Shown here piece after piece: positions 1,999-9,480 of a stretch of DNA of 33,768 bases (positions are counted from its first letter, which is position 1; the number at the start of each line of letters is the position of its first letter). This DNA is from Salpingoeca rosetta (lineage: Eukaryota > Protista > Choanoflagellata): assembly GCA_033442325.1 (NCBI GenBank), contig JAWQFM010000025.1:102873-136640 (forward strand), given 5' to 3'. The position numbers and the translations under genes are program-made. The notes under the pieces are model-generated. The model searched no databases. It had not been told where the DNA came from and was given only the letters and a program-made list of their open reading frames with translations.

Positions 1999-4900
1999 AT
2001 GGGCGGTTACCGCGTCCCTTGCGCTTCGTCAGCAACAGTGCTGCTGGCAGCGATGGTGCTGGTCATCGTGAGCGTGTGTCCATCTCCGTTATCGGTTGTT
2101 GTGATGGCAATGCCAACGCGAGAGCCGAACGCGTGCGAATCTCCAGACGCCACCCTCGCCACCTTTGATGTCGTGAACGTTGATGGCACGCACGTCCAAG
2201 TCGAAATTCAACCCACAGACGACAGCAACAGGTTGGTATGTGTACGTTGCCGTGTGATGTTGTGTGATGTTGTGATGCTGTTGTTTTGTTTGCTTTGTTT
2301 GCGTTGCTTGCGTCCAAGTGCTCACGCCTGCCGCCGTTTACCACGCACCCCACATGCTCCACACCATCAATTACCACCAATTACCATCAGCGTGATCAAT
2401 GAGCCGCTGCTGCTGTCGCTGCATGAGCGCGGTCCGTTTGCGCGCGCGGGTTCGTATCGTCCGCCCGTCAACGTCCACGGCAAAGACATGACGCACCTCA
2501 TATCCGATGCTCGCTGGCTCGCGGGCACAGCCGGTGCGTAGTGTACTGTGTGATTGTGTGTGTGTGTGTGTGTGTGTGTGTGTGTGTGTGTGTGTGTGTG
2601 TGTGTGTGTGTGTGTGTGTGTGTATGTGTGTGTTTGTGTGTGTGTGTGTGTGTATACATGTATATCATGTATCCCCTCCGCTTTTCCCTCCGAACTTACC
2701 CACAACATCACCCCCCTTTTATCACCTCCTCTCTCATTTCCCCTCCTCTCCATCATCACCACTTAGGTGGCGTGGACGGCTCTATTGTGCGTGTGTCCGT
2801 GCACCGGTTTGGACTGCAGGGGTTTGCACGCCTCTCGTCCGGACACACGCTCGTGTTCGAGCCGCCAACGCACCCCGACTACGCACCATCACCACCACCA
2901 TCACCATCTCCATCGTCTTCATCTTCACCATCATCGCCGCGGTTTGTGTGTGTCTCCGACACAATCACGGACACGAGCGGACGGCTGACAAAGGGCGACA
3001 CCGACACCGCGCCGCCACACGCCCGCCCATTCCAGGCAGAGTTGCAACACCGCAGGCAACAGCAACACCAACAACGGCAGCAGGAGAGTGACATGCGTGC
3101 TGGTGGTGATGGTGGCACTCGTGCTGGTGATCGCGTGCGCCGTGAAGGCCCCATCAACAGCAACTACTACGTCTGCACGCTGTATGTGGACATTGATTCC
3201 TATTTCTACGACCAGTGGAAAGGGCCGTGCAGCAGCGGTGGCGCTGAGAGCGATGACACATGTCGATCGGAACTGCACACGCGTGCGCTCGTTCGCGCAA
3301 TTGATATCATTCATCAGGCATCAGCCGTCTTTGAAGACAACTTCAACCACTCTGTCATCAACTACCAGGTGCGCTGTGTGCGTGCATGTGTGCGCGCGCG
3401 CGCGCGCGCGGGGCGGTGTGTTTGTTTTTGTGCTTCATATTAGTAGATCGACACTCCGACGATCTGTCTTTTGTGTGGGGCATAAATGTTTGAAAAAACA
3501 GAAGTGCNNNNNNNNNNNNNNNNNNNNNNNNNNNNNNNNNNNNNNNNNNNNNNNNNNNNNNNNNNNNNNNNNNNNNNNNNNNNNNNNNNNNNNNNNNNNN
3601 NNNNNNNTATGTGTGTGTGTGCGTGTGTGTGTGTGTGTGTTTGTTTGTTTGTTTGTTTGTTTGCACACAAGCTCCTTGTTTTCATTCATGTGCGTGATTG
3701 TTCCTGACGTTTCGTTGTTCACAATGCGTCAGCATGCTTGTAGTACACGCCCCTCCTCCCTCTTCCCCGACTCTCACCTCACCCATCTCGACCTTCCACC
3801 CCCAAACCCCTTCCTCATCTCTCTCTCTCCATCTCTCCATCACCAGGCGGCATCTGCTCGTCGTACATCTTCGAAGACGACAACAACGACGGATATGCGG
3901 TCAATGTTGGTTTCACGTCCACGAACAGCAACGGCAGCCCCACTTCCACCTTCAGCTCCGTCCTCACAACCGCACACGAACTCGGACACGCATCAGGTGC
4001 CTGGGATACACATGTGGTGTGATATCATGCGTGTGCACGTGTGTGTGTGTGTGTGTGTGTGTGTGTGCGTGCGTGGGTGTGTGACCTCTGTGTGTGTTTG
4101 TGTGCGTAACCCACATGTGCATGCGCTCTCGTGTCATCTCTGCTTTCTGTTGTTGCACCTCACACAACTCAATTCAACCACTCCCGCCAATGTCCCACTG
4201 CAACCCCCCCCCAACACCACCGATACAGGCGCGCGCCACGACTGCTGCACGTCAGACCCGTGCGGCGATCTCCCAAACTGCAACACGGACGACCCCGGAT
4301 CACACGAGTGCTGGCCATCGGCTGAGGATGGGGGTCCATATCTCATGTTCCCGTCCGTCAGCAGCGCCGCTAATGCTGGTGCCGCAAACTCCAACGCAGC
4401 AACCTTCTCCCCGTGCTCGCGTGCGGACATTGTGAATCTCGTCGCGAACGAGGGCAACTGTCTCATTCGTGAGGACCCGTGCGCCTTTGGCGGCGACTGC
4501 TGTGACGACGGCGGCGACGTGTTGCCTGCAGGCACGTTCTGCCGGCCCGCCGATCCGCTCAACACGTGCGTCAAGGACGCGGTGTGCAACGGCGTTGACG
4601 GGTACTGCCCACCATTTGACCCCAAACCAGACGGTATGCCGTGTGACCTCGACGCAAACCCGGACACGCTCGCAACGACAGGCACGTGTCACGAGGGCCA
4701 GTGCAGCAACATCTACACGGCCGTGTGCTCGCAGATCAACCTGCAAGGGTGCACGCTGCCCGGTAACGAGTGCATTGCCGCCTGCCGCACCCCGGGTGGC
4801 TCGTGCTATGCGTATGCGAGCGCGTGCGGGCTGTCGACGTATTGGCGCGACACGGAGACGTGCATCATGGCATCTGAGGATGCACCGTGCGCTGTGGACG

Positions 4901-7900: not shown

Positions 7901-9480
7901 CGACGACGACCACGATGACGACAACAGCAACGCCGCCGGTGCTTGACGGGTTCAACCTCGTGTTCCTCGGCCATGTGGCCAGCAACACCAATGGGCCCTT
8001 CGTGCGTTTCTCGACGGCATTCGACAGCAGCGCACAGCTGAGCTCCACCAGCGACGTCACCCTGCAGGAGTGCGGCATGATGTGCATTGATGCCCCGGAG
8101 TGTGCCGGCATCTTTGTATGGACGCCCCTCCACGGGACACAGCGGTGTGTGCTGCTGCGTGATGTTGGGTCGAGTGGCGGCACGGAGACAGGGTCCGAGT
8201 CATACAGCTTCCAGCGCATTGTACCCACAACAACAGGGGCAGGAATGTCAGCAGCAACAACAACAACCACACCACCCACGACATCGTCCCTGCCATTCCT
8301 GCGTGAGCTGGACGGGTACGAGGTGACGTTCACGGGTGCAATCGACAGCAACACGGGCGATGCACGCCGCTTCTCCACCGCCTTTGACGCCTCGTTTGTC
8401 CTCAACACCATCGACAACCAGGACACGAGCGTGTGCGCGGCCGCCTGCGACAGCATGGCTGCCTGCCTCGGCATCTTCCTCTGGATCCAGGCGAGTGGCA
8501 CCACGCGGTGCGTGCTGTTGTCTGGGCTGGGGGCGGAGTCCGGCGCCACCACGGCGTCTGTGTCGCTCTCCCTCACCAAAGTGGGCGTGGCACCTCCAAC
8601 GCCGGACGGGTACGAGCTCGATTTCGTGGGCAACATCCCAGGCAACGACGGCGAGGCACTGCGCTTCTCCTCCGCGTTTGACGCCACCGCACGCATCCAG
8701 ATGCTGCAGGGCGTGACGACGGACGATTGTTCCACTGCGTGCGACAGCGATGACGCGTGTCTGGGCTTCTTCTTCTGGATTGTGCGCGGGGACGACACGC
8801 GCTGCTACCTGCTCAACACGCTTGGATCATCGGCAGCAACGTCCAGCCAGTCGTACAGCTTCCGCCGCGTCAACCCGCCCAACGCATTCGAGGCGCCTGC
8901 CGGGTATGTTGTGTCATACGAGGGCAACACGGCTACCAACGCGGATGGACAGGCCCTCCGCTTCCACACGGCGTTTGACGAGAGCGCGCGCCTGGCCACG
9001 TTCACATACACCACGCGCGACAACGCCGCTGCGTGTGCGATGGAGTGCAACAACATTACCGCGTGCACGGGCATCTTCTACTGGATCAAGAGCGCCGATT
9101 CGATCACCTGCCACCTCTTGGCAGAGCTAGGGGACGGGCCGTCTGCCACAGCCTCAAATTCCTACTCCCTCGCCAAGCTGTCCGCGCTGCAGGTGACCGT
9201 GCCTGCAGGCTACAACCTCACGTTTGAGGGCCTGACGTTCACCAACACGGACAGCCCGCGCCGGTTTTCGACAGCGTTTGACGACGTGTCACGACTCGGC
9301 ACCATCTCAGACATTGGCATTGACACGTGCGCCACGCTGTGCACGTCGTCGGAAGAGTGTGCCGGCTTCTTCCACTGGACAAAGGGCTCTGGGGAGTTGG
9401 AATGCCGCTTGCTCAACGATCTTGGCAGAGAGGAGGGATCTGCAACAACATCCAACTCTTACAGCTTCACCAAGCTCTGA
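1999..9480 (+). CDS. Secreted ADAM-type (M12B, ADAM10/17-like) zinc metalloprotease with disintegrin-like, Cys-rich, TSP1, mucin and six PAN/Apple-like domains
   Basis: Exons: 1999-2231, 2391-2533, 2767-3368, [probable missing exon(s) in gap 3508-3607], 3847-3996, 4229-4914, 5344-5608, 5884-5987, 6238-6366, 6652-6703, 6932-9480. All introns are GT..AG and in phase except across the gap. Features: hydrophobic N-terminus (VLLAAMVLVIVSVC); prodomain ending in furin-type RVRR; CTLYVDIDSYFY (compare ADAM10 CQLYIQTDHLFF); spliced zinc motif HELGHASG|ARHD; Met-turn YLMFP; disintegrin-like GTFCRPAD..CVKDAVCNGVDGYCP; TSP1 FGPCEGTCGAGVQRRVAIC. No transmembrane segment. Confidence 0.85.
3508..3607. other. 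Assembly gap (100 N) inside the ADAM gene
   Basis: Run of N. The flanking exons are out of phase (phase 0 to phase 1). Confidence 0.99.
5063..5175. repeat. (CT)n microsatellite following a (GT)n tract in an ADAM intron
   Basis: Directly visible. Confidence 0.95.
7603..9477 (+). repeat. Six tandem ~92-aa PAN/Apple-like protein repeats with an RF[SH][TS]AFD signature
   Basis: Approximate units: 7603-7881, 7942-8220, 8308-8580, 8602-8870, 8896-9180, 9202-9477. Consensus G[YF]xxx[FY]xG..RFSTAFD..CxxxCxxxxxCxG[IFV]FxW..C(x)LLxxLG..S(Y)SF. The C-x3-C-x5-C..C core is typical of PAN_1/PAN_4. Confidence 0.75.

Follow-up and report, generated by a model that had tools for sequence, protein, structure and literature searches.

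The stretch of DNA analysed in this work, hereafter the window, comprises 33,768 nucleotides (nt) of the choanoflagellate Salpingoeca rosetta (contig JAWQFM010000025.1), and carries on its plus strand, at positions 1999-9480, a eukaryotic gene whose short introns are rich in GT/CA microsatellites. According to our analyses, this is probably a single gene of ten or more exons encoding a modular zinc metalloprotease zymogen of about 1721 amino acids (aa), which would be ADAMTS-like in function while being built on an ADAM10/17 core. What the data establish is an mRNA joining all exons, intact motifs, the folds of the modules, and the absence of a C-terminal membrane anchor.

Gene structure and transcription

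The exon model was obtained by six-frame translation and splice-site reading, and all its introns are of the GT..AG type with pyrimidine-rich acceptors. Exon 1 (1999..2231) holds the start codon, an N-terminal hydrophobic segment recognized from sequence and hydropathy, and the start of the prodomain, its junction 2231/2391 being present in the RNA contigs of runs X4 and X5; the prodomain extends through exon 2 (2391..2533) into exon 3 (2767..3368), which also encodes the dibasic site RVRR, opens the M12B catalytic domain with ~75 residues, and ends in phase 0. After an assembly gap (3508..3607, written as 100 N), exon 4 (3847..3996) continues the catalytic domain as far as HELGHASG, with the zinc motif starting at 3975, and exon 5 (4229..4914) contributes ARHD, the end of HExxHxxGxxHD, followed by the Met-turn, a disintegrin-like part and a Cys-rich part. 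Exon 6 (5344..5608) encodes a TSP1 repeat (about 5440-5583), exons 7-9 (5884-5987, 6238-6366 and 6652-6703) a module of ~95 aa, and exon 10, entered via the junction 6703/6932, a mucin-like Ser/Thr/Pro stalk (6932..7590) followed by six PAN/apple repeats (7594..9480) and the stop codon at 9478-9480.

The original prediction had set out from an open reading frame (ORF) of 849 aa at 6931-9480, which has neither a start nor a signal sequence of its own and is entered at a phase-1 acceptor (cgccAG followed by TG, at 6931/6932); this phase matches the end of the 52-nt exon 6652-6703 (TGCG followed by gtgagt). Re-reading of the sequence returned exactly these coordinates for the ORF, the acceptor and the 52-nt exon. 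The further claim of an in-phase chain leading back to the catalytic exons stood in part: the GT..AG exons are in phase, but the chain is broken at the assembly gap, where some 84 aa of the catalytic domain are missing. In the window the frame stays open over 1637 codons (326 + 1311 residues), and addition of the 84 hidden residues gives the full length of ~1721 aa, in agreement with the predicted single protein of more than 1600 aa, all exons being present on one mRNA.

Transcription was assessed by aligning the reads and contigs of four sequencing runs to window positions 1990-7989; two of these runs are RNA-like contigs (X4 and X5), one consists of raw RNA reads (X21), and one is DNA-like (X1). 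A single RNA-like contig of 3110 nt (X4, record 9) carries exons 1-10 up to position 7340, ending in the mucin repeats. The critical junction between exons 9 and 10 (6703/6932, listed as 6702/6931) is crossed by 14 raw RNA reads of X21, which begin at 11 different points, and is present in the X4 and X5 contigs as well. Contigs of these two studies yielded GT..AG joints listed as 2228/2388, 2532/2766, 3993/4226, 4913/5343, 5985/6236, 6365/6651 and 6702/6931; no spliced joint was present in the DNA-like run X1, and the RNA depth in intron bins (X21) was 0. The junction 5608/5884, whose intron contains a long GT repeat, is absent from the joint list; it is deduced from the fact that 285 nt of contig correspond exactly to exons 7, 8 and 9 (104+129+52). 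First mates aligned to the minus strand, as expected of plus-strand RNA in usual stranded libraries. Thus, the predicted splicing is borne out at 6703/6932 by 14 reads, and at the upstream junctions by X4/X5 contigs or by contig arithmetic; instead of transcripts stopping before 6932 and a separate start for the mucin/PAN ORF, we found one contig that spans the junction and an exon 10 devoid of its own signal start.

Two GT-rich 21-nt stretches in introns 1 and 4 (2281-2302 and 4087-4107) are matched by a very abundant RNA from elsewhere, in which 16 other letters lie between them. This foreign RNA reaches a depth of 3596 in X4, compared with 147 for the present gene, and of 18.9 in the DNA-like run, and the joining 16-mer is absent from the window. 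These matches inflate two depth bins and are probably due to chance similarity of low-complexity sequence.

The assembly gap falls in the middle of the catalytic domain. Exon 3 leaves in phase 0 and exon 4 requires a phase-1 entry, hence the letters flanking the gap cannot join directly. In the X4 contig, exons 1-3 correspond to record positions 2103-3089 and window positions 3845-3993 (exon 4) to 1703-1851, and the 253 nt of contig between exons 3 and 4 (true acceptor 3847) match nothing in the window; since 253 leaves a remainder of 1 when divided by 3, this insert restores the reading frame. Further, when a profile of 15 homologues is compared with the window, matches extend over positions 2-64 (exon 3) and from 158 onward (exon 4), leaving ~90 mid-catalytic positions (about 65-157) uncovered. 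One or more exons, encoding ~84 aa of the catalytic domain, therefore sit inside the gap, whose true length must exceed the 100 N given in the assembly. Contigs of the DNA-like run X1 break at the flanking microsatellites and so fail to span it. Consequently, any gene model drawn on the present assembly loses part of the catalytic domain at 3508-3607.

Two more gaps of 100 N occur in the window (25412-25511 and 30182-30281), and gene models there may lose exons likewise. Downstream of the gene, three ORFs belong to unrelated genes: 10195-11682 on the plus strand, with a Pfam match to DUF5074 (1.5e-8), 12281-14155 on the minus strand, matching Kelch (2.8e-4), and 16721-17656 on the plus strand, matching aconitase (7e-23).

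Modules of the encoded protein

The only hydrophobic segment of the protein is N-terminal, at residues about 5-40. Hydropathy analysis detected none after residue 40, and the sixth PAN repeat is followed almost at once by the end of the protein, a hydrophilic C-terminus, which leaves room for neither a transmembrane anchor nor a signal of the glycosylphosphatidylinositol type; the predicted lack of a C-terminal membrane anchor was thereby upheld. The prodomain contains a lone Cys in the motif PRFVCVS (2937-2957), a candidate cysteine switch, and the dibasic site RVRR (3132-3143) lies at the start of the catalytic domain of the family.

The catalytic core presents an intact metzincin zinc site, HELGHASGARHD, across exons 4 and 5 (3975-4242), HELGHASG and ARHD being divided between the two exons, and a Met-turn, YLMFP, at 4339-4353. 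Exon 3 gives a weak Pfam match to Reprolysin_5, and exon 5 matches Reprolysin_2 (5e-4) and, searched alone, has ADAM17 as its best PDB match (E 0.003). Searched against the profile of 15 homologues, the exon 3 side of the window protein scored an E-value of 1e-14 (positions 2-64) and the exon 4-5 side 3e-84, so that zinc site, Met-turn and family profile concur in placing the catalytic domain within M12B, as had been proposed. The disintegrin-like part (4447-4614) matches Pfam Disintegrin with an E-value of 9.1e-5 and 23.6 bits, below the curated cut-off of 35.1; every invariant Cys column of the family alignment is retained in the disintegrin-like/Cys-rich region. The TSP1 repeat exceeds the cut-off of Pfam TSP1_ADAMTS (PF19030; 25.3 bits vs 23.8, E 1.9e-5) and aligns with the TSP1 of homologues.

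The ~95-aa module of exons 7-9 has no Pfam match, and a jackhmmer search with it returned no match in the local set. It is 60% identical, with the same exon layout, to positions 3089-3202 of a genomic contig (L001) from a relative. A profile of the post-TSP1 module of anchorless paralogues reached only 9.6 bits against it, for which reason identity between the two modules is not claimed. The AlphaFold2 (AF2) model of a homologue's post-TSP1 module is all-beta, with a predicted local distance difference test score (pLDDT) of only 61, and an Atlas feature search with the paralogue module gave no match above 0.82.

The stalk consists of Ser, Thr and Pro to 72% over 225 aa, and is therefore mucin-like by composition, its O-glycosylation being a prediction only. 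Within it, at 7505-7515, four base differences (T>C, G>A, T>C, T>A) distinguish the window from all covering runs (X21, X5 and X1; X4 has no depth there). All of them lie near contig ends; an error of assembly, a difference between strains or the collapse of a repeat would each account for them.

The six PAN repeats (7594-7884, 7933-8223, 8296-8583, 8596-8877, 8890-9183 and 9193-9477) are ~100 aa each and mutually 34-46% identical, with four invariant Cys apiece, which are conserved across all 13 repeats aligned. Their assignment as PAN/Apple-like, made in the original prediction from the letters, is sustained both by Pfam scores above cut-off (PAN_1, 9e-15, 54.7 bits against 21.4; PAN_4, 1e-11, 44.7 bits against 27) and by fold: the AF2 model of repeat 2 (pLDDT 96.3) superimposes on the plasminogen PAN domain with a VIA Z of 9.6 and a root-mean-square deviation of 2.4 over 75 aa. 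Other fold matches of this repeat were the HGF N domain (Z 8.5), MANEC (7.2), the factor XI apple domain (7.1) and the apicomplexan galactose-binding lectin SML-2 (6.6). Altogether, the analysis supports the domain order foreseen for the protein, namely a signal-like N-terminus, prodomain, RVRR, M12B, disintegrin-like/Cys-rich region, TSP1, beta module, mucin stalk and six PAN repeats.

Family assignment and choanoflagellate relatives

ADAM10/17-type genes are known outside animals (PMC2770060; PMC12377791), while ADAMTS proteases are conserved throughout animals (PMC3002383), where secreted reprolysins with TSP1 constitute a hallmark of matrix biology (PMC3002383; PMC4448532). Our comparison with animal proteins is based on profile E-values against PDB, and the tree described below covered the choanoflagellate family plus the window protein. 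When the profile of 15 homologues was searched against all PDB sequences, it matched ADAM17 at 1.3e-38 and ADAM10 at 2.8e-30, and snake-venom and classical reprolysins at 4e-5 or weaker; no ADAMTS chain appeared at 0.01 or better. Together with the score of 3e-84 between the window protein and this profile, these matches indicate that the protease core is of the ADAM10/17 type and not of the ADAMTS type.

With ADAM17 (TACE) and ADAM10 (Kuzbanian), the animal membrane sheddases of MEROPS M12B, the window protein shares the catalytic type, HExxHxxGxxHD, the Met-turn Y-x-M-[YF]-P, a prodomain with a dibasic convertase site, a divergent disintegrin-like and Cys-rich region, and the lack of an EGF module. 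In contrast to them, it has neither a transmembrane helix nor a cytoplasmic tail, and thus lacks the topology of a sheddase, and it adds TSP1, the ~95-aa module, the mucin stalk and six PAN repeats, reaching ~1721 aa as compared with 748-824 aa. Its traits in common with animal ADAMTS are an M12B domain with no membrane anchor at the C-terminus, a TSP1 repeat recognized as TSP1_ADAMTS, and C-terminal ancillary modules that would set location or substrate. The order in ADAMTS is disintegrin-like, TSP1, Cys-rich and spacer (e.g., PMC4448532), whereas in the window protein it is disintegrin-like, Cys-rich, TSP1 and ~95-aa module; moreover, the catalytic type differs, no spacer was detected, and where ADAMTS have TSR arrays or PLAC, GON and CUB modules, the window protein has PAN and mucin. 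The likeness to ADAMTS was proposed from the outset to be convergent, and the profile matches and the domain order bear this out: it reflects similar design and not common ancestry.

Exon 5, used as the query against 1.84 billion representative proteins in an exhaustive search, retrieved only 53 at E 1e-3 or better, the best with 43% identity, and all hits with a source name were choanoflagellates, from at least nine species; the named sources include Mylnosiga, Bicosta, Salpingoeca kvevrii, Microstomoeca, Craspedida sp. UC1, Didymoeca, Hartaetosiga and Monosiga brevicollis (MONBRDRAFT_36614). The ADAM10/17-like proteins with TSP1 of Craspedida sp. UC1 (P0013), Mylnosiga fluctuans (P0006), S. 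kvevrii (P0008) and M. brevicollis (MONBRDRAFT_36614) show 33-42% identity with the window protein, namely 40-42% where the exon 5 part is compared and 33-40% in blastp alignments of 217-345 aa. A word-index search with residues 230-760 of P0013 returned P0013 and P0011 only. According to Pfam scans of 23 homologues, reprolysin, disintegrin and TSP1 recur in the same order across the family, and several relatives share TSP1 directly after the Cys-rich part. Most differ from the window protein, however, in having a transmembrane helix, after which come SH3 or SH2 domains in the cytoplasm; others are anchorless with a different post-TSP1 module, S. kvevrii P0008 adds malectin, and both PAN and a long mucin stalk are absent from all 23. 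The catalytic-to-TSP1 region was used for a quick unrooted tree, which split the anchorless group from the rest (SH-aLRT 98) and placed the window protein on the anchored side, near P0013, P0057 and P0006, in an exact position that is unsupported. The architecture had been predicted to be lineage-specific, and this was partly confirmed: the named members of the family are all choanoflagellates, but the TSP1 fusion is family-wide and most members are anchored with SH3 tails, so that only the mucin and PAN tail looks specific to this gene.

Among the anchored relatives, the cytoplasmic tail carries its own SH3 (P0013, P0011, P0006 and P0014) or SH2 domain (P0042). Animal ADAM tails carry proline-rich SH3-binding motifs instead. 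Apart from these proteins, positions 559-3400 of L001, a genomic contig of an AT-rich (37% GC) relative, contain a likely orthologue with the same exons 4-9 and the same boundaries; the contig stops just after exon 9, before any mucin/PAN exon.

Counterparts of the PAN array were looked for by a word-index protein search with exon 10, which gave three hits only, low-complexity Thr words having filled the candidate list. Hartaetosiga gracilis P0001 is a stand-alone array of the same PAN subtype ('RFSTAFD'), 37% identical over 519 aa, with the same repeat length, four Cys, and also a short mucin stretch before the array; it differs in having five repeats, its own signal peptide and no protease. 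Because this subtype occurs as a stand-alone secreted array in H. gracilis, the window gene may have arisen by fusion, via a phase-1 intron, of a PAN-array exon with a protease gene. The 'RFSTAFD' subtype is also found in single copy in mucin-rich proteins (P0002 and P0003 among the PAN-bearing set), one of which has a somatomedin-B match.

PAN modules are carbohydrate or protein binders, and both PAN-trypsin and an Aphanomyces subtilase-PAN have been described (PMC10084794). Plasminogen, HGF, factor XI and prekallikrein, as well as the Aphanomyces protein, thus resemble the window protein in bearing PAN/apple modules on the same chain as a secreted protease; nevertheless, they are serine proteases whose PAN modules are N-terminal (animals) or single, whereas here six PAN repeats lie C-terminal to a metalloprotease, behind a mucin stalk. 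Our literature searches brought up no report of a reprolysin fused to PAN, which is a weak negative. As judged from sequence comparison, the protein appears to be an unusual domain combination within a known protease family, its mucin and PAN tail being the part that looks gene-specific.

Alternative readings and proposed function

Several points weigh against a single long secreted protease. The intactness of the ~84 hidden catalytic residues is judged from length and frame. Reads were aligned up to 7989, so that an unseen splice in the last 1.5 kb of exon 10 is formally possible; the share of words present in the RNA-like runs is 0.65, compared with an exon fraction of 0.67, which argues against such a splice. 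Moreover, the PAN part has 3-7x the RNA depth of the protease exons, which fits a 3' bias and also a second, shorter transcript. In the latter case exon 10 would also be transcribed alone, the PAN array being mainly a separate product and the fusion a minor one; X21 depth rises from ~4-6 in exons 1-9 to 14-25 in exon 10, that of X5 contigs from 5.5 and 12.6 to 85.5, and H. gracilis P0001 demonstrates that a stand-alone protein with signal, mucin and five PAN repeats exists. Such an internal start seems improbable to us, however, as exon 10 contains no start codon with a signal sequence behind it, its first in-frame ATG being inside the mucin stretch; depth climbs stepwise from one end of the gene to the other, a pattern typical of 3'-biased libraries; read starts do not cluster around 6932; and the 14 junction reads are at least equal to the depth of exon 9, which means that exon 9 transcripts continue into exon 10. 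It is scarcely credible that assembly or read-through produced an artefact, or that the gene is decaying and no such protein is made: the gap within the gene and the base differences at 7505-7515 could be read in that sense, but spliced contigs of two independent studies and the raw reads of a third agree on every junction, and an open frame, the catalytic motif, the conserved Cys and six intact PAN repeats have all been kept.

A different question is whether the protein is secreted. Its N-terminal hydrophobic stretch is long (~30 residues, about 11-38), longer than the usual core of a signal peptide, and could be a type II anchor that holds the protein in the membrane until the prodomain is cut at RVRR. 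Against this, the signal-like segments at the start of the homologues are short and ordinary, the hydrophobic core is followed by a small-residue site (VMA), and cleavage at RVRR would free the mature enzyme either way; we give membrane retention a small but appreciable chance. Inheritance of the protease-TSP1 pairing from an ancestor shared with animal ADAMTS, which would make this a true pre-animal ADAMTS, could be argued from TSP1_ADAMTS being the best Pfam model of the repeat and from the missing anchor. Yet this is very unlikely in view of the family profile, which finds ADAM17 (1e-38) and ADAM10 (3e-30) but, up to an E-value of 0.01, no structure of an ADAMTS, of the different domain order (PMC4448532), and of the quick unrooted tree, where the window protein groups with membrane-anchored relatives. 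Two separate genes, a true ADAMTS and a pseudogene were hence considered and rejected on the evidence of spliced RNA, profile and open frame, respectively.

With the single secreted zymogen as the preferred reading, a sequence of steps can be proposed for its function. The N-terminal hydrophobic segment would take the protein into the secretory pathway, where the prodomain, through the lone Cys of PRFVCVS, may keep the enzyme latent until a convertase of the kexin/furin type cuts after RVRR and frees the mature enzyme. The presumably O-glycosylated stalk would then space the catalytic head from the multivalent PAN array, and this array might attach to a carbohydrate or protein on the cell coat, on the theca, in the colony matrix or on the surface of prey, so that proteolysis becomes localised. 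The overall role would resemble that of ADAMTS, as a secreted reprolysin steered by ancillary binding modules. A bolder version, which we regard as unlikely but worth stating, is that choanoflagellates independently built a matrix-directed, ADAMTS-like secreted protease whose six-PAN lectin array tethers it to a defined glycan of the theca, colony matrix or bacterial prey, and which remodels the coat at cell-type transitions.

Taken together, our results show that TSP1 was also combined with a reprolysin in the closest relatives of animals, this time on the ADAM10/17 branch, and that the tails of this family diversified, some acquiring membrane anchors and SH3 domains, others malectin, or a mucin stalk with a PAN array. 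The gene thereby offers a testable case for the convergent assembly of a guided extracellular protease, in an organism amenable to gene knock-out.

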